This document shows positions 11,657-64,000 of a DNA stretch of 64,000 nucleotides, one piece after another. The notes beneath the pieces are model-generated. The model did not search any database and was not told the DNA's origin. It saw only the letters and a list, made by a program, of their open reading frames with translations. Each line of letters opens with the position of its first letter. The first letter of the stretch is position 1. Position numbers and translations under genes: made by a program. Location of the stretch: the NCBI GenBank assembly GCA_964188305.1, contig OZ076900.1, one strand, 5' to 3'. The DNA comes from Podarcis bocagei. Taxonomy: Eukaryota.

Positions 11657-11821
11657 CCAGGCGCCCTCTTACCAGCGGCCGCTATTTTGTCGCCTTTTGA
11701 CCCAGCAACCTCCAACCAAAAGCACCGTCATTTCGACCCCAGCACTCTTGAAACGCTTCTGTGCCCATCGTGAGGTTTCCCTGTGCCCTTGGTCCGTCCT
11801 CCTCCCGCTCTGCGCTCTTAC

Positions 11822-12016
11822 CTGTCGTCGTTTTGAAAGCTCTGATCCCCCAGGAGCAGGTCCCGGAACCGGTAGCGAGGCGGCAAGGGAAGCACCTCGG
11901 AGTCCAGCTCGTTCATCGTCAAGGAGGAGATGTCCAGGATGACCCCGCTCTTCTGCTTGTTGGCGCCAGCCGTGCCGGTGCCGCCGCTTCGGTAGCCGCC
12001 AGTTGACGACTTCAGC
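11822..12016 (-). CDS. KCNT1: KCNT1 coding exon 2 (195 nt, phase 2-2)
   Basis: Encodes [93 protein letters not shown] is the KCNT1 version of the motif (KCNT2 has LESEVPPLPP...GWQNDDR). Pyrimidine tract plus CGCAG| acceptor and AG|GTAAG donor. Downstream exons lie outside the window. Confidence 0.95.
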
Positions 12017-22230: not shown

Positions 22231-23303
22231 GGGGGGAGAGATTTTCCTTTCTGGAAGTGCTGGTGGCTCATCCTCCTTCCTTCCCCACACGATCCTTGTT
22301 ATAATCACCTCTGCATGTTCAGGACTTAGCCATCACTGCATTTCACATGTACTGTGATAGCTCTAATCACAGCAGATCATCTTAGGACAACCTCCTGCTT
22401 GGAAATGCAGGAATTCCAGAATAAAGAGCTTTCAGGGGTGCAAAGCCCTTCCCACGTCAGGGCAGGTGGTACTTTTGCACCCAAAGGGCTGCATTCCCTA
22501 AAGAGTAGCCTTGTGGGGCCACAGGCCAGAAGTGGGTGTGGCCAGGGGCAAAAGTGGGTGGAGCAATGGGTGTGAATCTTACCTCTGTATGCTAGTAGGC
22601 TAGTTTCTACTCACACTCACACAAGTTCCTCTCTCTGTTTTCCATCCAGGCAAGCAGGAGGTACCACCAGAGCTCAAGGGCACATTCCAGACAGGCAAAA
22701 ACACCTGAGGAGGATGCAAAGCAGGGCTTGCGAGGGGTGTGTGTCCAGAGGGTCAGAGTGAAAGGCCTAGAAGGCTGCGCTTGGCCCCTGGACCTAACGT
22801 TCCCGACCCCTGCCTTGCAACTACTCTGCAAGGTAAGTCAATATGATCACCCCCTCCCTTTGTCCCAACTTGCCTTTAGACTGCAGAACTGACGTCCTCC
22901 ACCAGCCAGCAGAACTGAGGGCTACTGAGAGGCTGTTCCACCAGTCTCCAATGAAGGCTCTTATGGAGCAAGAGGGAAATCAGCTTGGGCTCCTCCACTG
23001 GCCAGAGAAGGAGCAGGTGCAAGGAGTTTGCTTTCATTCCCTCTCTGTGAGAAAGAACTCTAAAATACAGGTTGTTCTGAATTCCTCCCCATCCTGATTG
23101 CCTCCCAGCTTGATCTCATGTTTAGATAAATCACTCTGCTTAGTTGCTAAATAATACATCCAGACCACCCCTCTTAACTGACTTACCCTTAAGGCACCTC
23201 ATCAAATGATCTCCGTTGTTACACTTCCAATAGGAGTACTATAAGCAGTATTCAGGAAAAGGTACCAGGAGCTGAACATTAAGCCTCTGTGCAATATTAT
23301 GCC

Positions 23304-31774: not shown

Positions 31775-32166
31775 CAGAGGCATACCTCGGATACCTTGAG
31801 CCCTTGGCAAGGAGCTGTATTGGCACAGTTGTGTTGGCACCCCGCAGTAAAATAAAATAGAATCACTTTACCGCAATAGCCACACTAAAAATGACCACAT
31901 TTACAGGACCCAAGTACTCAAAATGTCTGGAGTGAGGCTGAGGCAAAAGAGGAAGGGTGAAAAAAATTGCACACTTTTTTGTGGAACGGTGCAAGAAGTA
32001 TGGTAGGTTTCTCTCACATTTTATCTTTCTGGGACTGTGGTCGTGCATCACCACAAACATATCCACCATACACTACATAGTCTGGTAGGTGGTTTTTTTG
32101 GGGGGGGGGAGCTGGGCCTGCACTCCTGTCCAGGGCTGGTTTTGCCAACCCCTAGATATGCCTCTG
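31775..32166. mobile_element. hAT-type MITE
   Basis: TIRs CAGAGGCATA / TATGCCTCTG; degenerate TSD TGACTTAG / TGACTGAA. Confidence 0.65.
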
Positions 32167-32218
32167 TGACTGAATTTAGATGGAAACCCTCGCTGAACTT
32201 CAGGCATATGACTAAGAG

Positions 32219-33034
32219 CAGCGGTCGGCAACCTAAGGCCCATGGGCCACAAGCGGCCCATGGGGGTCGTTTAACCGGCCCATAGATTCCTGCTGCCCGC
32301 TCAGGGACCCCCATCACCCACTCGGTTGGCTCCCATGCGCTGCGCTAAATCAGCACGGAGAAGAGCAGTCACCGCCTTCCGCGATGCTGGCCAGTTTCCC
32401 ATTGGCTGCAGGAAGCTCCTGCAGCCAATGGGAAGCTGCATACGCCTCCTCAGCACTGGAAAGAGTGTTTGCATATGTGTGCGTGTGCGCGCACTCAGCG
32501 GCGTAGCGTGAGTTGTCAGCACCCGGGGCAAGGCAAGTAATTTGCGCCCCCGCACCCGGGGCAAGGCAAGTAATTTGCGCCCCCCCCTAACCCCATACCT
32601 GCCGATCTGAGGTGAGTTGCCGCTGGCGCTGCCGCCCAAACTACGCCGCTTGCCCGGAGGAGGGGGGGGCAGAGAGGCGAGGAAAATGCAACATGGCCCA
32701 GCAGCTGCAGCAGCAGCAGCGGAGGCGGGGCTGTGAGGAGGGGCTGCCTGGCGCGTCCTCCGCGGCCCTGAGAGCTGCTGCCTGCCGGACGCCTTCAGCC
32801 CGGACGCGCGCACAGCTTGTCGGTTCCACGAGACATGGGGCTCTGCTACATCCTGCGCCGGAGACTCTTCAGCGACTCTGGAGGCAGCGAGCGCGCCCCC
32901 CCCCCAGATGTTGCGCCCGGTGCGGCCGGCCCCCCTGGCACCCCCCACGCTATGCCACTGCGCGCACTCCAGCCCACCGTAGTATCTGCGGGACCGTGAA
33001 CCTGCCCAAGCCACAGAAACTTTGCTGACCCCTG
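32219..33034. mobile_element. hAT MITE (outer element of a nest)
   Basis: TIRs CAGCGGTCGGCAA / TTGCTGACCCCTG; perfect TSD ACTAAGAG; 5' end similar to the element at 13573. Confidence 0.88.
32496..32960. mobile_element. hAT MITE (inner element of the nest)
   Basis: TIRs CAGCGGCGTAGCGTG / CACGCTATGCCACTG; perfect TSD CGCGCACT; internal 33-bp tandem duplication at 32519-32584. Confidence 0.88.
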
Positions 33035-51504: not shown

Positions 51505-51953
51505 TGTTAGAATTCCTGCTCCATGGTTGCAGTCATGGGGTTTTTGTCTATCACATGACGGTATATGTTTTGACTCCACAAAGTGTGGGAAGTGACGGAG
51601 ACAGGATGTTTGTGTTACTGTGTTCCGTGAAGTGGGACTATTGTCCTTTGTTCTTTCTCTCTTTGCTGTCTGATGCTAGAGAGAGAGGGAGCCATGTTGC
51701 AGTGCTTCGTGTGTGTTTATATGTAAATAAAGTAGATTAGCCAAAATGCTGAGTTGCTGAGGTCTGTTACGCAAGCTGCAAAGACTCGGCGGATCCCTAA
51801 GTGTGCCGGTGTCTGTTGGCATCAGTCGCTGTGATGTTCGGGCAGAAGAAAGCTTTTGAAGCTCCCGAACGATCGGCCAGGAGGGAGAGAACATGCCAGT
51901 TGGGTATGTGTCTCTGCCAGGGTCCTACTCGAGTGTAGGACAATCTCCTAACA
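51505..51953 (+). mobile_element. Probable solo LTR
   Basis: TGTTAG...CTAACA inverted termini, internal AATAAA, about 450 bp; TSD unclear. Confidence 0.6.
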
Positions 51954-52353
51954 ACTATGTAACAGCTCTCCAAATTAAACAATTGAAGCATAGGATTGTA
52001 GAGTTTGAAGGTACTCCCAAGACATCTATTCCACCCCCTGCAAAGCTTCAGCTACTTTCAGGCAAAGGACAAACTAAATATATTCTGGGATACACAGAAC
52101 TAACACTTAAAACATCAGCACTGTGTCATTGTCTCCTGCTTATTATTGATATAGGGGCACAAATGGGCATGGGCAAGGGGTCCCTGCCCCAAGAAGCTTA
52201 CAATCTAAAATTTGACACAGGTGACACAATCAAAAGAGGGGGAAGAGCAGGAAGAAGTCAAGCATGTAGTTTAGTAACGCATCGTGTGTCATTTGTATAC
52301 TAAACACCAAACAAGGAAGTCCAGAATTTGCTGCTGCTGTGTGTGTTGTTTTT

Positions 52354-52456
52354 TTATCTGCTCCAAGGCGACTCAGAAAGTTCCAGATAATCAGGAGGCG
52401 TTTTGATCACAGTGACACCTCCACCTGGATGACAGGTTTGTGTGTTTCCAAAACGT
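52354..52456 (-). CDS. KLHL20-like kelch protein terminal coding exon
   Basis: Pyrimidine tract plus TTGCAG| acceptor; encodes RFGNTQTCHPGGGVTVIKTPPDYLELSESPWSR-stop, paralleling recalled KLHL20 RLYGGMNYRRLGGGVGVIK; phase matches. Confidence 0.9.
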
Positions 52457-53377
52457 CTGCAAGAGAAGAGAGAGGCTGTTAATGGAGCGTATACTGTTGA
52501 TGCAAAGGCAAGGGGTGGGGAACATTTTTCTACCTGAGGGCCATATTCCAGTCTTCGTGACATGCCAGGGGCCACATAGGTGAGGCCACAGGCAGAAGTG
52601 GTGGAGCAACTAATGTAAATGCCACCTTTGTGTTGCAGGCTGGTTTCCACACTAACTCACAGATCCCTTGCTATCCTCATTCCAGGTGAGCAAGAGTTCA
52701 AGAATACGTTTCAGCCAGGCAAAAACACTTGAGGTGAGCCAGGCCCTCCAAGGTCATGTGCCATGGGGGGGGGATATACCCCCCTCAGCCATCTCACCAC
52801 ACCCTTTCCCACCAGGTGGCTCCCACCTCCTAACTCCCAAGGCCAGGCTGGGGCTCTGGGGTCCTTTCTGGTGCAAGGTGGGCTCTGCAAGTTTCTCCAC
52901 TCCTGCTTCTGAAGGCACAGCATTGATCGAAGAAGCCATGGGGGGGTGGGGGGGCAGCTTCCTTTCTTCCAAAAATGTGTTCCTCCCTCCCCATGCAAGC
53001 AGACAGTTAGCGACGCAAGTTACTATATTAATAATAATACTGAGGAGTTGATGGAAGCGTCTGCCTTAATACGTGTGCCATAAGAAGACCCTGTTTCGTT
53101 ATTCGTTCTGCTTGTGTTGCACGTTCCTGCCCTTTGGGAAATCAGAGGCTGCCTCACAAGATTGAGAGAAATTACAGCTTAAGCCAAGTAATAAACTAGC
53201 AGCAACTAAAGGAAATTGTGCATAAAAGTCAAAATAACAGGCCCCCAGCAGCAGCCAGAGGTACCCCTCCCTCCAAACTGTGGAATCTGGAACAGATTTA
53301 GTCTTCCACTCTGAGGTGAGGAGGATGCCCCCCACCCACTCTGCATGCCTCCTCCTCCTACTTTTTCATGGGCTGTA

Positions 53378-53713
53378 CAGTGGTGCCTCGCAAGACGAAA
53401 AGAATCCGTTCTGTGATTCTCTTCGTCTGGCGGTTTTTTCGTCTTGCGAAGCAAGCCCATTGACGGATTAGTGGATTAGCGCTATTAGCGGCTTTTAGCG
53501 GCTTATCAGCTTATCGGATCAGCTGATAAGCAGCTTAGCGGCTTAGAAAAGGGGGGGGGGAGGAAAAAAAACCAGCAGGAACTCGCAATACATTTTCATC
53601 TTGCGAAGCAAGCCCATAGGAGATTCGTTTCGCGAAGCACCTCCAAAACGGAAAACCCTTTCGTCTAACGAGTTTTCCGTCTTGCGAGGCATTCGTCTTG
53701 CGGGGCACCACTG
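53378..53713. mobile_element. Tigger/pogo-like MITE
   Basis: TA-CAGTGGTGCCTCGCAAGACGAA ... TTCGTCTTGCGGGGCACCACTG-TA. Confidence 0.88.
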
Positions 53714-54056
53714 TATTTATTTACGGGCTCCACAAGAGGCTCAAATCCTTTTCACTACAAGCCTTATAAAATAAATTACTACTGCGGGACTTGACATCTT
53801 TCTGCAGGGCCTGCAAGACAGAGCTGTTCCACCTGGCCTTCGGTTCGGACTCAATCTGACCCTTATGTTGCCCTCCAATTATGGTTTTGATGAGGCTGCA
53901 TTTTAAATTGCATTTTAACCTGTATTTTATTTTATTTTTTCCTTTCCCCCCTATTATGTTTTTACTGTAATTTTACTGTTGTTAGCCACCCTGGTTCTGG
54001 CCGGGAAGGGCGGGCTATAAATAAAACTTATTATTAAAATTTATTATTATTATTAT

Positions 54057-54103
<47 letters not shown>

Positions 54104-54563
54104 ATACTATACCGTGCCTGTTTATCCTGACAGGGACTCGATGTCTGTGTTGTTAACGAAAGTGCATACCTCTGTTCGTGCATAAATAAATATATTAAAT
54201 CTATTAAGTGTGTACATGTGTGTGTGTGTGTGTTCAGTTAAATATATTGTGCATATTTAATATTATTTAATTTAATAATAAATAATATCATTTACTTGTG
54301 TATATTAAATAATATTAACTACACTGCGTATTTACAATATGGAAATGTAATTCTGTGTGTGGCCCCCGGGCTCTGTGTTGAAGTACTCTTGCAGCCCACT
54401 TGGACTGAGAGGTTGGACCGCCCTGGCTAAGAACTTGGAGGGCTCCTCTCCCCACCCCCCACCCCCATCCTCAAGGTGGCGCCATGCAAGGTCTCAAGAG
54501 TTGTGTTGCTGGGCCAGGAAACTCCCATAAGAGCAGCCTCACAGAAAAGGGATGATAGCTTAC

Positions 54564-54670
54564 CTCCATCCATTTAGCTCCACGTCAAACGCTTCCACAG
54601 TGGTTACGTGGACAGTGCCGTCATAACCCCCGATGGCTAAGAGGTAACCATTGGCAGCAACCAGGCTCAC
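54564..54670 (-). CDS. KLHL20-like kelch protein exon (107 nt, phase 0-2)
   Basis: Encodes VSLVAANGYLLAIGGYDGTVHVTTVEAFDVELNGW(R); GAAG| acceptor, AG|GTAAGC donor. Confidence 0.92.
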
Positions 54671-54898
54671 CTTCGTTGTTAAAAGTAAATAGAGAATTCT
54701 CAGTTTTGGCACCACACACATAAATTTTCATGCAATGGCTGTGGAAGGCCTGCAGCTGAGTGGTGGAACAACTGCTTTGTGTGCAAAATGTTCCACGTTC
54801 AACATGTGGCATCTGCAGACGGAGTGGAAGAAAGACTCCTGTCTAGAACTCCAGTAAGCCGTTGTGTAGATAGTCAGGGTATTATTACTATTACTATT

Positions 54899-55209
54899 AA
54901 AGGTAAAGGGACCCCTGACCATTAGGTCCAGTCGTGGGGTTTATTGGCCGAGGGAGCCGGCGTACAGCCTCCAGGTCATGTGGCCAGCATGACTAACCCA
55001 CTTCTGAAGAACCAGAGCAGCGCAGAGAAACGCTGTTTACCTTCCCGCCAGAGCAGTACCTACGGTATTTATCTACTTGCACTTTGATGAGCTTTCGAAC
55101 TGCTAGCTTGGCAGGGGAAGGGACCGAGCAACAGAAGCTCACCCCGTCGCTCACTTCTGATTGGCAAGCCCTAGGCTCAGTGGTCTGATCCACAGTGCCA
55201 CCTGCATCC
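54899..55209 (-). mobile_element. Sauria SINE with deletions, in a kelch-gene intron
   Basis: Family sequence; ACTATTACTATT repeated on both flanks. Confidence 0.88.
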
Positions 55210-56039
55210 CACTATTACTATTTATTAAATGTGAATACCACCCTATAGCCACAGGTGGTTCACAAGATAAAATCACATTATAAAAACACAAAACACGTAA
55301 TGAAAATAAAAACCCAATAACCCCCCCCCCAACACATTTTAAATGGGTGTCAATCAGCCAAAGGCCTGGTTAAAAAAGAACATTTTTGCCTGGTGCCTAA
55401 AGGTGCATAACAAAGGCGCCAGATGAAACCCCTGGGGTAGACAATGCCTATTTAGATGGACCAGTGGCCTCAATTGGTATAAGGCAGATTCCTGTCATTT
55501 AAAGGGGAAGGGCCATAGCTCAGTGGTAGAGCAATAGAAGATCCCAGGTTAAGTCCCCAGCATCTCCATGTAGGGCTGAGAAGGACCCCTGTCTGAAATC
55601 CTCTGGCCACTGCCAGTCATTGCAGACATTATTGAGCCAAATGGACCAAGGGTCTGGCTCTGAGGAATGTTCCCATCTTCCTAACATTCTGTCATGGGTT
55701 GATCTAGTCATGAAACAAAGAGGCCAGATAAAAAATAAATAAAGCAGAGCTGCAAATATCATTTCAAGCAACAGTCTGATCCTATACCTATCTACAATAT
55801 AAATATAAATCCTATACATATATATTGAGTTCAGTGGGACTTGCTTACAGGTAGGTGAACACTGGGATGACAGCCTAAATAGATTGAGGGTTTAGGCCGC
55901 TATCCTAAACACACTCATCCCTCCATCCCTTAAGCACCCAGTAGATTGCTATGGTCTGCTAGAGAGTTTCTCCTACAAGTTCGGAAGGCGTTGAAAGAAG
56001 TTTAGATGTTACTGTGATGAGTTCCCACAACACTGATAC

Positions 56040-56248
56040 CTTGCTCCTTCTTGACTTCATGGGCGTGACAACAGACCATTCATTGGCAAGAGGATCAAAT
56101 CGCTCAACACTGCACAGCTCAGTGAGGTCATCTCTCCCACCAACCACATAGATATTGCCTTGAAAGGTAACGCAACCAAGGTTCTCTCGACAGGTCTTCA
56201 GGGGAGGGCAGGGAGTCCATCTGTCTTCCAGGGGGTTGTAGCGCTCCA
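56040..56248 (-). CDS. KLHL20-like kelch protein exon (209 nt, phase 1-0)
   Basis: Encodes VERYNPLEDRWTPCPPLKTCRENLGCVTFQGNIYVVGGRDDLTELCSVERFDPLANEWSVVTPMKSRRSK; GGRDDxTEL is characteristic of KLHL20. CCTCCAG| acceptor, AAG|GTATCA donor. Confidence 0.95.
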
Positions 56249-56428
56249 CTGGAGGAGGCAATAAAATTGGGACACAGGGTGCATTCAGGAATGGGAACTA
56301 TTGCATTAGTTTCCCTGTTTTCTCATGCTCCTTTGGCAGCCCAGTACCTCTTGTGTAATGGAACTGCGGCTTTTTGACTGGTGTGCCGGCATGCCATACT
56401 AAATACCATTCACACTTGTGGGCATGGT

Positions 56429-56654
56429 CACTGGCAGAGGAAGAGGAATGCGGGGGGAGTGCACCACCCCTGGCAGCGCGATCCCGGTGGGGTGCCATCA
56501 CAGCTGCCCCCCCCCCCGCCTGCACTGGACACCACGCCCCCAGGACGCATGTCACACCCCTGCGGGTGGTGCGCCCCACCCCCAGGATGTGCGCCCCACC
56601 CCGCCTGCTCTCCACCCCCTGCCCCCGGTGCCAGAACATGAAGTTCCACCACTG
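56429..56654. mobile_element. hAT-type MITE
   Basis: Perfect TSD GGCATGGT; ends CACTGGCAGAG / TTCCACCACTG; GC-rich interior. Confidence 0.78.
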
Positions 56655-56938
56655 GGCATGGTGTGACACAACAAACATCACTAGACAGCATTGCTACTCC
56701 CATTCCCTTTCCACATTTATGCTTCTGTTCTCCCATGGTTCCCCCATGAAAACAACAGGAAATAATTCTTGTCACTTCACTCCCAAATATTTTCCAGGTT
56801 AAGGAAGATGCAATTGAGGGGGAGGGCGCTTCCACTAGGCTCCACTAGATTTCTGGAAGTGGCTTTTATACCCCCAAAAAATAATGTGAAAATTAATATC
56901 TAGGGAAATGTCCATGTGAATGCAGCCACAGTCTAGAT

Positions 56939-57139
56939 CAGAGCTTTCAAAACTTTTTCATGTTGGTGACATACTGTTTAGACATGCATCATTTTGCAAT
57001 ACAGTAATTCACTTCTACTAGCAAACCGGAGGTTAAACTAACCCCTTTCCAGGAGGAGAGCAGGGAGCATTTGCATGGCACACCTACACACTACAGCTGA
57101 CACACTAACGTGTCATGACACACTGCTTGGAAAGCTCTG
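56939..57139. mobile_element. hAT (Charlie-like) MITE
   Basis: TIRs CAGAGCTTTC / GAAAGCTCTG; TSD GTCTAGAT / GTGTAGAT. Confidence 0.82.
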
Positions 57140-58128
57140 GTGTAGATATTCAAAGCTTCGCATTTGCTCCAGTGTGCATGTGGTGCTCTCTCCGGACTGG
57201 ATGTCGCCACTGACTTCAGCACTGGGGGCCAGTTAGGGATGAGAGAGAAATTAGACTCAGCTTACATTTGAAGGCAAACCTATATAATCCAGACTTTCTG
57301 AAACATTAGGCAAACACAGCTCTCCTTTGAAATTTGCATTTCTTTGGATTTTGCAATACCATGCTCCAGCCAAGCAGTGGTGTACCAAAATGCTTATGGT
57401 AGTATAAAGTGTGCTTTAAAAGGGTGCATATTTTTATGACAATAACATACAGAAAGTGTGTTTGGAGAAACCACTTGCAAGAATGTGTATATTAGGCAAA
57501 ATCGCACACACAAAATGTGTACATGCGGTGAAACTCAAACTTGAAATGCTGGTGAATTTTCATCTTTAAAAATAAAAATCACACACTCCCATGGAAATGC
57601 ATGGAACTGAATTAAGACTGGAAAAATGAGAACCTGAGAGAAACCAAAGTTGGCATATTTGCCAATTTGTACGCAACCAGTAGCAACAGCCACAGTTTAC
57701 ACTTGCTGATTCATGCTGGAGAAAAATAAATACAATTGCTTCTCACTGAGCTTCATGTTAATGCATGTGTTACTTTAAACCACATGAGGGCACTGTTTGT
57801 CTATTAGTCTAGCCAACACTTGGTTGCAATGTCTCTGTCTAAGTGAATTCTGCCCCTAAAAGCTGAGCCAGTTGGTTTTTTCTCTCTCCCAACATGTTGA
57901 GACAAGATGTCTATTTCTCTCTTTCACCTCTACTCATCCTGTAAATAGTTCTTGCCCAGATGAACCTTTTTCTGCATGAATAAAGCCTTTGAACTCCAGA
58001 AACTGTAAGGGATCGTTCCAATCTAATTCATCCAAGCTGCAATCTTTCCTAACAGTTGGAGGGTGTTTTTTTGGGGGGGGTTGCATCTCCTCTTCAGACT
58101 CCTGTCTACAACCAGAGCTTCTTGTTAC

Positions 58129-58262
58129 CTGAATGTAATGTAGAGTATCCATCAGATCCACCAACAGCATACAAGTAGCCATCCAGTACTGCCAAGCCTA
58201 GGCCCCTCCGGCAACGATTCATAGGTGCCATCTTGCGCCACCTGTTGAGTAGTGGATCATAT
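58129..58262 (-). CDS. KLHL20-like kelch protein exon (134 nt, phase 2-1)
   Basis: Encodes YDPLLNRWRKMAPMNRCRRGLGLAVLDGYLYAVGGSDGYSTLHS; TCTAG| acceptor, CAG|GTAAC donor; frame continuous with flanking exons. Confidence 0.93.
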
Positions 58263-58737
58263 CTAGAGACAAATTTACAATTGTGAGAATGCTTAGAGAC
58301 GATTGAACCAGTGTTTACTTCACTGGACGGAGAGTTCCAAAGGGCACAAAGGATGCAATGGAAAGAATAAGATGGATGCAAACAGAATATAATTTATTGA
58401 TATTGACTTATGCAAAGAAAGTACCTGTATATTTAAGAGAGTTAATATTATAAATGACTGTTGCCACTAGACTTGGTTATGCCATATACTGGAGATGGTC
58501 CAACATTCATGTTGTTAACTGGGAAGCACAGTTATATGAGTTGCATAAAGTATGTCAAAGGTTACTGAGTATTAACAAAGGTCCACAGAAGCAAAATTTG
58601 AGAGTTTGGAAACTTCCTGTAGCAGCCCCAAATATATGGGATTCCTTCCACACAGAGATGCATCTGGCATCTTCGTTGTATAGCTTTTGTCATATGTTGA
58701 AGATGACAAAGCCTTCTTTGACATTGTGTGTGTGTGT

Positions 58738-58783
<46 letters not shown>

Positions 58784-59138
58784 CCACCCTATTCTTCTGA
58801 TTACACATTTGAACTAATTTTAATATTGTATTTTTACACTGTTGTAACCTTATCTGAGGCTTTATGGTGAATTAAGAAATAACTACCAACCACCACATCA
58901 TAACAAAATGACAATAATGGTGCATTTCTAGACAACAGAGGAGCTTTTTAAAGTTTCTAGTGCATTAAAGCTCCTTTATAATATGGTTGGAGTTTATTTA
59001 ATGGTGTTAAATACATACTTACTAAACGTACATGCAGCTATATAGATTACCAAACTGGTTATATGAAATTAATCAATAAAGAAAAGGGACCATTAAATAA
59101 TTATTTGTATCAAATGTTCATAGTGTTCCATTTAATTA

Positions 59139-59265
59139 CCGTATTTTTTGCACCATGTGCGTGTTATGGAGGGAATGCCTACGGGTGGCATGCCTACGGA
59201 TTTTCCTCCTCTAAAAACTACGTGCGTGTTGTGATCGGGTGCGTGTTATAGAGCGAAAAATACGG
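59139..59265. mobile_element. Tc1/mariner (Tc2/pogo-like) MITE
   Basis: TA-CCGTATTTTTTGC ... GCGAAAAATACGG-TA. Confidence 0.8.
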
Positions 59266-59443
59266 TAATCGTTTCTTTTTAGGACTGATTCAGTATAAGT
59301 CCCACTGGAAAATCTCTATTCGAAAGGCAGGGTGGACACTGGTTTATCTTTTTAATGAAAACCAAATAAATGAACAAATGTACAAGAACAATCATCATCT
59401 TGCCATCATCACACCCAAAGGGCATCCATTGGATGCAGCTTAC

Positions 59444-59587
59444 CTCTCAGTGGTGTTGACGCATAGGAGCCCATCGTAGCCACCAACACAGTACAGGTAG
59501 CCTCCTAGCTCAGCCACGGCCGCATCCTGCTTGGGTTCACGAAGCGGCGCCACATCCCGCCTCCACTCGTTGATTTCAGGATCGTAC
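59444..59587 (-). CDS. KLHL20/diablo-like kelch protein, internal exon (144 nt, phase 2-2)
   Basis: Encodes YDPEINEWRRDVAPLREPKQDAAVAELGGYLYCVGGYDGLLCVNTTE(R), a kelch repeat with the W-x-x-DVAP feature of KLHL20/diablo. AAG| acceptor, AG|GTAAGC donor. Absent from the ORF track. Confidence 0.92.
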
Positions 59588-59764
59588 CTTCAGCAGCACA
59601 AGAAGGAAGATGAAACAGAGTTGCAGTATTGTTGTTCTTTATTTTACTTTCTTTATTGAAAAATAAAAAGTACAAAATTACAAGTGCACAGAGATAAGAT
59701 AAGACACACAAAAAAGAAGAAACAAGAAACAGTACCCGTGAAGACATATGTGGTGCTGTATCGT

Positions 59765-60080
59765 TCAAACTGATGAAATTCTTTCAACGGCATCTGAAGT
59801 ATTGATGTATTTAGAACCAAGTGCTACCCATCTTTGCAGAGGTGCTACGTAAGAGTATTCCAAGGATGCCCAATTTGGACAATTATTATCGGTTGCAGAT
59901 CTCCAGAACTGTGCACTTGACAGTAAATAGGCATGATGATATAGTTCTATATCTGGGATCCCAAATCCTCCTTCCTTTATTTTCTGCATGGATATTCCCG
60001 GGGTTTAAGACCCTCAAAGGCATTTTCTAAACAAAGATTTGATTCTTTGTATTTGCTAGAAATATATGGTTTGGAACAGA
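59765..60080 (-). mobile_element. L1/Tx1-clade LINE ORF2 fragment
   Basis: KEGGFGIPDIELYHHAYLL matches the post-RT GG(L/F)GxP..LYY motif of L1 ORF2. Confidence 0.7.
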
Positions 60081-60236
60081 GTTAGAAGCTGCTAAGGCAG
60101 ACCATAAAGGCCCACTAGGAGCAGGAGGGCAGAAGACAGAGATGTCCACAGAAGGTGGAGCTAATGACAACCACAGCCAATGAGAGACAGAGCCAGCCAA
60201 CTCTGGTTTTGTTTCTAAAATATACTAAGAGTTGAG

Positions 60237-60507
60237 TGTTGATTTCATGCTCTTTATTTCGGCTCATGGTAAACAGTGAGTGCTTTTCCCTAAAACCTCT
60301 GGCTATATATACATTATGTACACAATAGGTCCCATGTGATTGGCTGATTCAACTTCTGTCCTGGAGCCTGATTGGACTGCTTCTGCAGGCCAATCCAGTT
60401 GCTGATTCACTTCCTCTTGGAGCCTGATTGGGCTGTTCCTGCAGACCAATCAGGTTGCTGCCTTCCAGAATCCTAGCTGCCTATTGTTCTAGGATCCAAG
60501 CTTAGTA
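60237..60507 (-). mobile_element. Probable solo LTR with duplicated CCAAT module
   Basis: Minus-strand order CCAAT repeats, TATATA, AATAAA; approximately 58-bp internal duplication; TG...CA termini are restored when the Tigger-like MITE is removed. Confidence 0.55.
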
Positions 60508-60757
60508 CAGTAGAACCTCGACTTACCACCGCCCCTACTCATGAACAATTCGACTCGCGACTGTGACAAAGCTGGAAGTAAATACTGGGTTTGCCGCGAT
60601 TCACGCATGTGCAGAAGCAGCTTCTGCCATCGGCACATGAGCAGAATAGCACTGCCGCCAAATGCACACGCGCAGAATGGTGCTTCTACCAGCGACCCAG
60701 ATCGACTCACAAACGGACCTTCGGAATGGATTTCATATGTGAGTGGAGGTTCCACCG
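60508..60757. mobile_element. Tigger-like MITE inserted at the terminus of an LTR
   Basis: TA-CAGTAGAACCTCGACTTAC ... GTGAGTGGAGGTTCCACCG-TA. Confidence 0.75.
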
Positions 60758-60824
60758 TACATAATAGTTTCCATAGGAGTTCTACACAAGAAACACTGGA
60801 GCTAAAAGAGGTATAAGGGCAATA

Positions 60825-61028
60825 CAGTTGTACCTTGGGTTACATACGCTTCAGGTTACAGACTCCGCTAACCCAGAAATATTACCTCGGGTTAAGAACT
60901 TAGCTTCAGGATGAGAACAGAAATCGTGTGGTGGTGGCGGCAGCGGGAGGCCCCATTTGCTAAAGTGGTGCTTCAGGTTAAGAATGGACCTCCGGAACGA
61001 ATTAAGTACTTAACCCAAGGTATCACTG
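60825..61028 (+). mobile_element. Tigger/pogo-like MITE (TTAACC family)
   Basis: TA-CAGTTGTACCTTGGGTTA ... TAACCCAAGGTATCACTG-TA. Confidence 0.85.
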
Positions 61029-61884
61029 TAACCCACTGAACTAGCTATAAGTAAGGAGGTGGGCTGGCTATGGGCAAAGTGTGCTTGGTGGGGCTGGGTC
61101 TCGCTCAGATGAAGACTACTGACCCATGCCATGTAAGGACGTTCCAGTGCAATGCTAAGGCTAAGCAAGCGCCTCCATATAGCCAAGACCCTGACTTAGC
61201 AACCAGAGATAGCAACAAATTTTTTTTAACCCAGCTATCCTTCTGTCTTACATCACTGGACCCTGAGCTACCCTTGCAGTAAAGCAATCTCTTTTGGGAG
61301 ACAGGCAGCCTCCTGAAGCCAACCGCAGGCTGCAAATACAGCATGACGCATTACTGGCACCCCGCTGCCCACTCAATTAAGCATATATTTAGCTGTGGGA
61401 TTCCAGCCCTCCCTCCCTGGCAACACTTGCAAAATGAGCCAGAGGCACTGAGTTTGCCTTTAGCGAGAAATATCACATAGTAAATAGGTTGTCAAAGCCA
61501 TCAATCAGAGGAAGCAGTAATCACGTGGGTGGCTAAAGAGGCGCAGGGGAGGCCAAGGACGGCCTGTTTTGAAAAAACATTCATTCCACTGATGAGATGG
61601 ATGCTGCTGGCAAAACTCTGTTGCAACGAGGGAAAGGGTCCATATATTATTTCTCACCTGTTGCCTGGTGCCTTGACATCTCTATGCATATGTTTGCATG
61701 CATGTGTGCTGGACAGAAAAAACATCTGCTCCCTTCTCTTGAGATTTTCCATTTTAAAGCCACTTGAGAAGATCTGGCACCATTGGGGCAGGATTTGGGG
61801 GCAGAAATCCAGGACCCAGCTCAGGAGTAGGAGGGCCTCCAAAAGCAGCAGGACTGATTTGCCATGTTTCTAGGGAAGTGAGGT

Positions 61885-62087
61885 GATGCGGGTGGCGCTG
61901 TGGGTTAAACCACAGAGCCTAGGACTTGCCGATCCGAAGGTTGGCGGTTTGAATCCCTGCGATGGGGTGAGCTCCCATTGCTCGGTCCCAGCTCCTGCCA
62001 ACCTAGCAGTTCGAAAGCACGTCAAAGTGCAAGTAGATAAATAGGTACCTCTCTGGTGGGAAGGTAAACGGCGTTTCTGTGCGCTGC
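61885..62087 (+). mobile_element. Sauria SINE 5' half, fused to a truncated Tc1/mariner MITE
   Basis: Family head through GCGTTTCTGTGCGCTGC, then an abrupt switch to MITE sequence. Confidence 0.85.
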
Positions 62088-62088
62088 A

Positions 62089-62292
62089 GGTCTGGAGGTC
62101 CATTCTTAACCTGAAACTGTTCTTAACCTGAAGCACCACTTTAGCTAATGGGGCCTCCTGCTGCCGCCGCTGCACGATTTCTGTTCTCATCCTGAAGCAA
62201 AGTTCTTAACTTGAAGCACTATTTCTGGGTTAGCAGAGTCTGTAACCTGAAGCGTATGTAACCTGAAGCGCCTGTAACCCGAGGTACCACTG
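62089..62292 (-). mobile_element. Tigger/pogo-like MITE, one end missing
   Basis: Same family; intact end TAACCCGAGGTACCACTG-TA. Confidence 0.8.
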
Positions 62293-64000
62293 TAATATTT
62301 TTTTTTTAAAAAAAAACCATTTCTTTGTTAAACAGGCCTCCCCAAAGACAGAAAATATAACGGCAGTGGTTTATGAGGGGCAGGTCCTAGGAAATAAGGT
62401 CAGCCATGGTGCATGAAATCAGGTGAGAAATAGCTCGGGAGCAAGAGGAAAGTGATGGGCTCATTCTGAATCAGCTGGAGAGGGGAGAAAGATGTCAGCA
62501 GAGAAGGATTCTCAGCTTGGCCTCATTTCTATAAATGAGAGGTTGGAGTCTAACAGGGTTCATTAAACAGATATTTTTGTTCTTAAGCACCCAGCCACAG
62601 AAGCTCAGCTTTTCCACCCTGGGGGGCACGACCCAGCTACCCACCCTATGTTCCAAGCAAGCAAGAAACTGGTTTTTGATGAAGAAAGGCAGGTGAAGAA
62701 GTTCTCACTTGGCCCCTCCTTTTGACATCTTGGGGGGGGGAGGCATTCAAGTGAGGCTGAAAGTGAGCGAGTCCCCAAGGTTAGCCAAAAGGAACAGAAA
62801 ACAGAAGTGACTAAGGAGGAAATTGAAGAGATGGGGAGAAAAGGGCTGAACTCATGAGATGCAGCAGTGAAAATCAAAATACCAAAATACTCATTTGCCC
62901 CTGCAGACACCTGAGACACTTGTCATTAGAACCATGGCAGGTCACTTTACCCTCCCCCAGAGTATTTCCAGCTATACTGTGGGGATTTAAAGACATGATT
63001 TGGGATGCGGGATGAATTAAATTCAGTTTGCATTTAAAGGCTGTATCCCATTCAGTCCTACTCAGGAGTTGAACCACTGAAATTAAAGGATCTAAGTTTA
63101 TTGTTTCCATCATTTTCAGAGGGTGCACTCTGATTAGGACTAGTATTGACCAATCCCTAATTTGCAAAACAATATGCGAATGTCATAGAATCTTTCAGCA
63201 TTGGTATCTCAGCGCTTCCTCCAAGTCAGCATAGTGTAGATGCAATCTGGTGTAGTGGTTACAGTGTTGGACTAGGACCTAGGAGGCTAGGCTTCAAATC
63301 TCCACTCAGCCTATGAAGCTCACCAAGTGACCTTGGGGCAGTAGAACTCTCTCCCTATAACCCACTTCACAGGATTGTTGTGAGGACAAAATAGAGAGGA
63401 AAGGGGACCATGCATGCCTTCTTGAGTTCCTGGGGGGGGGGAGGTGGAATACAAAAGTAAGACATAATTAAATAAAAAAATAAATTAAATTACACTTTCC
63501 CTAAAGTCTTCAGGTTGGTACAGCAATTTCCCCCAGTTTATCCTCACAATAAGCTGAAAATTAAGCCACGTTGGCCTAGGATTACCCAGAAAGTTTCTTT
63601 CTCAACAGACAGGGATTATGAACTCTGGTCTAAGTTCAACACTCTGTTCAGTTTTTTGTGTTGTTTTTTTTAATAAGAAAAAGATTACACCAAAGTTGCT
63701 GCATTGCTAATGGTGCAACCATCTGGACCCTTCATGAAGGTAGTTATTTATGGCCAAGCCACCCTCCTTTCTGGAAAGTCAGTCCTATTTGTTCCTCCTG
63801 CTTAGGGTCATAGCTATTTTACAGTCCTTCAACGACTACTTTAGTCTCTTCTCATGTTTCTGATTGAGTAGCCCAGGCTGGATGGTTCAGATCTGCCAAA
63901 TTCTGAGAACTCAGCACTTGCACTAAGGATGCGATTGGTGTATCCATCGACCACTTTCAGATTATTGTTAAACCATCGTGGACTTGAAGGGAGCCTTAAA

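Follow-up and report, generated by a model that had tools for sequence, protein, structure and literature searches.

The 64,000-nt stretch of Podarcis bocagei DNA considered here (contig OZ076900.1; referred to throughout as the window) carries the 3' two-thirds of a kelch gene, comprising blades 3-6 and the C-terminus, which lies approximately 40 kb upstream of, and on the same strand as, a first coding exon of KCNT1. The combined results make it likely that these kelch exons are part of an expressed and constrained member of a kelch-only, KLHL20-derived family (labelled KO here), an intron-preserving duplicate of KLHL20 that predates the split between ray-finned fishes and tetrapods and is without the BTB and BACK domains.

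The kelch gene in the window

The exons recognised are listed below; all five lie on the minus strand, which an earlier note on this DNA had left unstated.

Exon A: 59587-59444, minus strand, 144 nt; kelch blade 3 (YDPEINEWRRDVAPL...); its acceptor is used in RNA
Exon B: 58262-58129, minus strand, 134 nt; kelch blade 4
Exon C: 56248-56040, minus strand, 209 nt; blade 5 and the start of blade 6; carries the KO-specific 'RENLGC'
Exon D: 54670-54564, minus strand, 107 nt; blade 6; junction 54670|56040
Exon E, terminal coding part: 52456-52354, minus strand, 103 nt, of which 100 are coding and TAA stands at 52356-52354
Putative 3' untranslated region (UTR): 51912-52353, minus strand, at least about 440 nt; estimated from the length of a transcript contig of run X1 (545 nt 3' of exon D, 103 of them exon E)

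When joined, exons A-E (697 nt) give a single stop-free frame of 231 amino acids (aa) that is closed by the stop codon, with AG...GT at every internal exon boundary. Splicing and translation thus reproduced the five exons, canonical splice sites and single open frame of the earlier note, and the RNA junctions agree with them. The motifs that it had listed as WxxDVAP, GGRDDxTEL and GGGVxVIK are present in the window peptide as EWRRDVAP, GGRDDLTEL and GGGVTVIK, and its figure of about 40/70 identities between exon C and KLHL20 was close to the 41/71 residues measured against the canonical protein. Exons A-D are matched by Pfam Kelch_1. The 'RENLGC' of exon C places Glu-Asn where KLHL20 has Lys498-His499, and exon E encodes the closing strand 'HPGGGVTVIK', with Pro for KLHL20 Leu592, followed by a short tail to ..SPWSR. 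Upstream of exon A the window extends for another 4.4 kb, and the 5' exons lie past position 64000; a tblastn search of 59588-64000 with snake, gecko, caecilian and fish proteins returned no MGV exon (the first coding exon of the family), no linker exon and no 184-nt blade exon.

RNA reads and contigs from run X1 and from three runs of bulk RNA (X18, X19 and X20) were placed on positions 54400-59700. A 1266-nt contig from X1 (depth 51) spans exons A-D and joins them at 54670|56040, 56248|58129 and 58262|59444; the skipped ends read CT..AC on the plus strand and therefore GT..AG on the minus strand. A further 545 nt of this contig follow exon D in the 3' direction (exon E and the approximately 440-nt UTR), and at its other end it reaches 126 nt 5' of exon A, onto one or more exons outside the window. 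Additionally, raw reads of X20 cross the B-C junction (5 reads) and the A-B junction (3 reads), always with the first mate on the plus strand. No reads across the kelch gene junctions were found in the bulk RNA of X18 and X19; therefore, expression of the gene is low or tissue-restricted.

The gecko (L001) and rattlesnake (L002) orthologues have the same five exon lengths, AG/GT sites and stop position as the window. Pairwise comparison of the three gave ratios of nonsynonymous to synonymous substitution (dN/dS) of 0.12-0.20 at dS of 0.7-1.5, so that the measurement for which the earlier note had called indicates constraint. The window kelch gene is a working protein-coding gene under purifying selection and not a relic.

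The window and the transcripts differ at 8 positions, 5 of them synonymous. Two of the transcript differences, I5T and Y37H, are states seen in gecko and snake, and the RNA runs therefore probably derive from a population or species slightly different from that of the assembly. At position 56158 (codon 123 of the partial coding sequence) the X1 contig has T for C, which changes the family-invariant glycine of 'RENLGC' to Asp; 3 X20 reads carry the window base. The introns hold a (TAC)n microsatellite at 54037-54103 and a (GT)n microsatellite at 58720-58780. Intronic repeats at 54754-55284 and 59156-59355 have very high RNA depth on both strands with many loose ends, and one intronic repeat has a tRNA-like 'GGGCCATAGCTCAGTGGTAGAGC' head at approximately 55510; the repeats at those two intervals are dispersed copies of the short interspersed element type, expressed elsewhere and outside the kelch transcript.

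Descent from KLHL20 and the KCNT1 neighbourhood

An exhaustive HMMER search with exon C alone (69 aa) returned mostly giant multi-kelch proteins, the scores of which add over repeats, and a phmmer search of the PDB with one exon was dominated by designed repeat proteins. Comparing the spliced peptide with the HMMER matches by local BLAST was more useful: a Crotalus protein matches the window peptide end to end at 70.6%; the family was then gathered from this protein, profiles of its relatives and cluster look-ups. Over the kelch domain, the window gene is identical to the KO members of Gekko at 83%, Phrynosoma at 74%, Crotalus at 72.5%, opossum at 64%, caecilian at 62% and fish at 44-53% of positions, to the canonical KLHL20 of any animal at 49-53%, and to other KLHL proteins at 29-40%. 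The fish members are recognised as orthologues by the tree, the N-terminal exon, the loss of BTB, the pocket substitutions held in common and synteny; raw similarity is no basis for this.

Maximum-likelihood trees (LG+C20; 48 and 54 sequences) united KLHL20 and KO in a clade with support of 100/100 in both, to the exclusion of other KLHL proteins, which ruled out KLHL2/3/17/12/8/18/1/4/5/10 and KEAP1 as the source family. The assignment to a diverged, KLHL20-type gene made in the earlier note was upheld by this clade and by KLHL20 being the best match among solved structures. KO was monophyletic (100/99) and its branching repeated the species tree, with (caecilian,(opossum,(gharial,(Phrynosoma,(Crotalus,(window,Gekko)))))) on one side and (sturgeon, teleosts) on the other. 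This monophyly and species-tree branching indicate one origin of KO before the actinopterygian-sarcopterygian split and vertical descent since. The stem branch of KO is 0.35-0.39, versus approximately 0-0.02 for branches of canonical vertebrate KLHL20 (the canonical kelch domains of lizard and frog are identical). Because the canonical branches are almost zero, the trees do not fix the attachment point of KO among the KLHL20s; imposing a single clade of KO and vertebrate KLHL20 lowers the log-likelihood by 1.46 units (approximately unbiased (AU) test, p=0.425), a result that is compatible with a vertebrate-stage duplication and no proof of it.

The exon structure also connects the two genes. 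Kelch-region exons measure 184/144/134/209/107 nt in canonical klhl20 (Onychostoma), 184/144/134/212/107 nt in pike KO, 184/141/134/206/107 nt in sturgeon KO and 144/134/209/107 nt in the window; intron phases are equal in all four, and the KO sizes differ by 3-nt indels only. A retrocopy was rejected, since all kelch-domain introns are common to canonical klhl20, and the description of the gene as an intron-preserving duplicate is borne out by these sizes and phases. Upstream of the ..LFA|VGGW boundary, which is common with the canonical linker exon, a linker exon and a first exon with 24 coding nt are all that KO has.

The downstream neighbour in the window is represented by one exon:

KCNT1, Slack-A-type first coding exon: 11821-11922, minus strand; matches 30/32 residues of the human KCNT1 N-terminus

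This match confirms KCNT1 as the neighbour, and the position upstream of it is ancient. In pike, a 1303-aa Slo/KCNT-type channel with Ion_trans_2, RCK and BK_channel_a domains is encoded 5 kb downstream of KO and on its strand, and the Slack-A-type exon of this channel is found 9.3 kb past the KO stop, giving the same gene order as in the window. On the upstream side, a galactosyltransferase neighbour is common to snake and gharial.

The earlier note had suggested that the gene is a whole-genome-duplication ohnologue. That origin is compatible with the AU result and with the paralogon position, and it is not demonstrated by them. KCNT1 and PSMD5 are located at human 9q33-34, which is paralogous to 1q23-31, the region that holds KLHL20 and KCNT2; this paralogy, together with the age of KO, favours an ohnologue with later loss of its 5' part. 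Under the preferred explanation, KLHL20 would have been duplicated at the DNA level with its introns kept, before ray-finned fishes and tetrapods parted, presumably by whole-genome duplication and then 5' truncation, and KO would have retained its head-to-tail place upstream of KCNT1 from the bony-vertebrate ancestor onwards.

A small-scale event, in which the linker and kelch exons of KLHL20 were copied beside KCNT1 in the bony-vertebrate ancestor, is possible although rather unlikely. Such a partial copy accounts for the absence of BTB/BACK in one step, and it agrees with the first retained KO exon ending at the canonical linker boundary, with a weak match of the sturgeon linker to canonical residues 284-300, with protein searches finding no KO in sharks, hagfish or invertebrates, and with the open attachment point in the tree. 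However, KO sits beside KCNT1/PSMD5, in the paralogon of the KLHL20/KCNT2 region, where a random insertion would be expected about 1 in 20 times (a rough estimate), and a single clade of KO and vertebrate KLHL20 was not rejected.

A further idea about the locus is that the KO-KCNT1 pairing, maintained for >400 million years, reflects functional coupling, with the propeller, through its rebuilt pocket and conserved, possibly lipid-anchored MGV..GE N-terminus, serving as a dedicated binding partner or regulator of Slack (KCNT1) that was dispensed with in eutherians. The two genes are so closely paired that automatic annotation has merged them in stickleback and Anabarilius. We regard this coupling as improbable. 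The two annotations in question are a stickleback (Gasterosteus, P0267) KO protein named 'kcnt1b isoform X21' and an Anabarilius grahami 'KCNT1' model (P0383, 1362 aa) that clusters with KO at 90% identity; they represent either read-through transcripts or model fusions. The cyprinids Leuciscus and Siphateles (clusters of P0320 and P0322) have two KO genes each on different chromosomes, consistent with both copies having been kept after the teleost genome duplication, perhaps beside kcnt1a and kcnt1b. Within the window, positions 32001-33000 (GC 0.63, observed/expected CpG 0.66) form the only CpG-island-like kilobase between the kelch gene and the Slack-A exon and are a candidate upstream promoter or first exon of KCNT1; a scan of 12-52 kb for a KCNT1 Slack-B-type first exon found no recognisable coding exon there.

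A propeller without BTB and BACK, and its altered pocket

The KO proteins are mostly 330-350 aa long and share a layout of a 24-nt (8-residue) coding first exon, a disordered and variable linker of approximately 45 aa, six kelch blades and a ..HPGG.V.. end. Their N-termini follow the general form MGV..GE, reading MGVYNEQG in fish, MGVQHERG in the caecilian, MGVYKERG in the snake (in frame inside a longer, doubtful gene model) and MGVIKGEQ in the opossum. No match to PF00651 (BTB) or PF07707 (BACK) was found in any of the KO orthologues, which come from >60 species. At the DNA level, tblastn with KLHL20 residues 1-300 gave no match in the window, nor in the KO loci of gecko, snake, pike and sturgeon searched together with 10-kb flanks, whereas the same probe found the canonical klhl20 locus at E=5e-118. 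The 9 kb upstream of KO in rattlesnake is filled by PSMD5-like and galactosyltransferase genes. In sturgeon, the weak linker match spans 17 aa of the canonical post-BACK linker (residues 284-300), so that the post-BACK linker exon may be the sole remnant of the BTB/BACK side kept in KO.

An AlphaFold2 model of the eel KO protein has a disordered segment at residues 1-54 followed by a propeller of 24 strands in six blades, with predicted local distance difference test (pLDDT) scores >90 in the core. Its top Foldseek match is the kelch domain of human KLHL20 (6GY5; template-modelling (TM) score 0.97, root-mean-square deviation 1.4 A, 48% identity), and KLHL17 ranks behind it at 33% identity. KLHL20 (KLEIP; Drosophila diablo), a BTB-BACK-Kelch adaptor of CUL3, is thus nearest to KO in kelch sequence, tree and predicted fold, and the two have identical kelch intron positions and phases and a GGGV.VIK-type C-terminal closing strand in common. 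KO differs from it in the new 8-residue first coding exon, in its fast evolution, in its locus upstream of KCNT1 and in having neither BTB nor BACK/3-box, through which it is predicted to have lost both BTB dimerisation and docking on CUL3. Because BTB and BACK are absent, the KO protein is very probably not a CUL3 adaptor. The earlier note had expected an uncharacterised CUL3 substrate adaptor, an expectation that fails in all orthologues, with no BTB/BACK upstream in snake, gecko, pike or sturgeon; it had also named disrupted upstream BTB/BACK exons as a sign against its own reading, and at the family level these exons are in effect gone.

It is improbable that the window gene is a complete second KLHL20-like adaptor with BTB/BACK exons just past the window edge. 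The 5' part of the gene does lie outside the window, and the transcript contig extends 126 nt 5' of exon A. However, all orthologues whose 5' end can be seen are kelch-only and begin with MGV..GE; in rattlesnake no BTB/BACK-like DNA accompanies the first coding exon and linker exon, which are 1-3 kb from neighbouring genes, what precedes blade 1 in gecko is the linker exon and not BACK exons, and the window gene is nested among kelch-only sequences with 97-100% support.

The pocket of the propeller differs as well. The degron of DAPK1 is contacted in KLHL20 by Trp326, Cys356, His373, Tyr378, Gln421, Gly423, Lys498, His499, Arg515, Tyr567 and Leu592 (PMC6720452), and all 11 residues are identical in the KLHL20 of sea anemone (Nematostella), amphioxus, butterfly, carp and shark. 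In KO, 7-9 of the 11 are altered, including a charge reversal at Lys498 and Leu592Pro, and the family-wide states are Lys498Glu, His499Asn (mostly), Leu592Pro, Gln421Tyr/Phe/His, Tyr567His/Asn/Asp and Tyr378Cys. The window has Y-G-E-N-R-H-P at positions 421, 423, 498, 499, 515, 567 and 592, and it displays neither the near-invariance of the KLHL20 orthogroup nor the LPDLV pocket. With these contacts substituted, the salt bridge to the degron Asp and the Leu592/His499 sandwich around the buried Leu are predicted to be gone in KO. Since the replacement residues are in turn conserved from fish through to reptiles, the pocket seems to have been re-specified and not to have decayed, and such a rebuilt pocket points to a new ligand rather than to simple competition for KLHL20 substrates.

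From these features, the KO protein would be a free-standing six-blade beta-propeller binding module and not an E3 adaptor. It may be soluble or anchored at its N-terminus, would bind a peptide ligand other than that of KLHL20, and could sequester or scaffold this ligand or join another complex via the conserved MGV..GE start. Lipid anchoring by N-myristoylation of the MG.. start has low odds: residue 6 is Glu in most KO members, which is atypical for N-myristoyltransferase substrates. The 5' exons of this species are expected to match those of its orthologues.

Kelch-only proteins of similar design are known. KLHDC2, KLHDC3 and KLHDC10, together with KLHDC8A/B, are like KO in size (approximately 330-400 aa), in having one six-blade propeller and in being without BTB. 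KLHDC2/3/10 join CUL2 via a C-terminal BC/Cul2 box; no such box was seen in KO, which ends right after the closing strand, although no formal test for it was made. The KLHDC proteins are akin to KO in the repeat only, as KO nests in the KLHL20 clade and its best family matches are of KLHL20 type.

Several points weigh against the reading of the window gene as a functional, kelch-only KLHL20 duplicate. The absence of BTB in this species is judged from its orthologues, the 5' exons being outside the window, and among those orthologues gecko is represented by a partial model and rattlesnake by models whose 5' extensions are doubtful. The window gene is at least as similar to canonical KLHL20 (49-53% identity) as it is to fish KO (44-53%). 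Two of the three bulk RNA runs show little or no expression, and one transcript contig has Gly-to-Asp at a family-invariant glycine, which may be an assembly error or a variant.

Distribution, naming and significance

Members of KO were found in >60 teleosts, sturgeon, the caecilian Geotrypetes, Gekko, Phrynosoma, three Crotalus species, gharial and opossum. Word-filtered and length-limited protein searches returned no KO from eutherians, birds, turtles, frogs, salamanders, coelacanth, sharks or cyclostomes, which is a weak negative. The loss in mammals suggested by the earlier note does not hold for the group as a whole, as the opossum has a member (P0411, Monodelphis domestica 'kelch-like protein 20 isoform X2'; 282 aa, starting MGVIKGEQ). 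The opossum isoform X2 skips approximately 47 residues of the exon-C region. In gharial (Gavialis gangeticus, L006:22200-22417) a frame change is present in exon C at approximately 22301-22305, GG motifs are damaged (GSPDG, GGFGG) and one-third of the locus is Ns; the frameshift reflects either an assembly error or decay towards a pseudogene.

A reading of the window gene itself as an unprocessed pseudogene, or as a non-coding remnant whose transcription is incidental to the KCNT1 locus, is very hard to sustain. The frameshifted gharial copy with its degraded GG motifs, the presence of the gene in few tetrapod annotations and the low expression of the window gene would all agree with decay. 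However, the frame is open over 231 codons, three squamates agree exactly in exon lengths and stop, with dN/dS of 0.12-0.20 at dS of about 1, splicing in RNA is correct, and the derived pocket residues are kept family-wide. For squamates, the dN/dS values and splicing largely led to rejection of this explanation.

The orthologues of the window gene exist in RefSeq/UniProt as automatic models (fish, Crotalus, Geotrypetes, Gavialis, Monodelphis), often partial, under the names 'kelch-like protein 20', 'kelch-like protein diablo', 'uncharacterized LOC...' and 'kcnt1b isoform X21'. In the literature searched, no paper treating KO as a family was found, and the names are automatic with no curated one. 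The use of 'kelch-like protein 20' for these relatives would suit a true but fast-evolving KLHL20 orthologue, a notion that is scarcely tenable, as Podarcis has a canonical KLHL20 (561-aa isoform) that is 98% identical to that of shark, with a kelch domain identical to the frog's, to which the window gene, placed in the separate KO clade, is only 51% identical. Fish likewise carry both canonical KLHL20 and KO. Because the canonical gene coexists with KO in squamates and fish, the window gene is, as the earlier note had proposed, a KLHL20 paralogue and not its orthologue.

Among CUL3 adaptors, KLHL20 ranks with the most conserved, and it is a drug target with relevance to autophagy, cancer and targeted degradation. 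Dozens of entries named 'kelch-like protein 20/diablo' or 'kcnt1b isoform' would represent a separate gene, to which orthology-based transfer of CUL3-adaptor function would be wrong. For comparative work on the epilepsy gene KCNT1, the locus adds a conserved upstream neighbour that is absent in human. Overall, non-eutherian vertebrates appear to bear a second KLHL20-derived propeller that is detached from the ligase and has a new conserved pocket; KO would therefore be a natural experiment in a substrate-receptor domain without its E3, and its presence in zebrafish-type models and opossum makes a knockout feasible.

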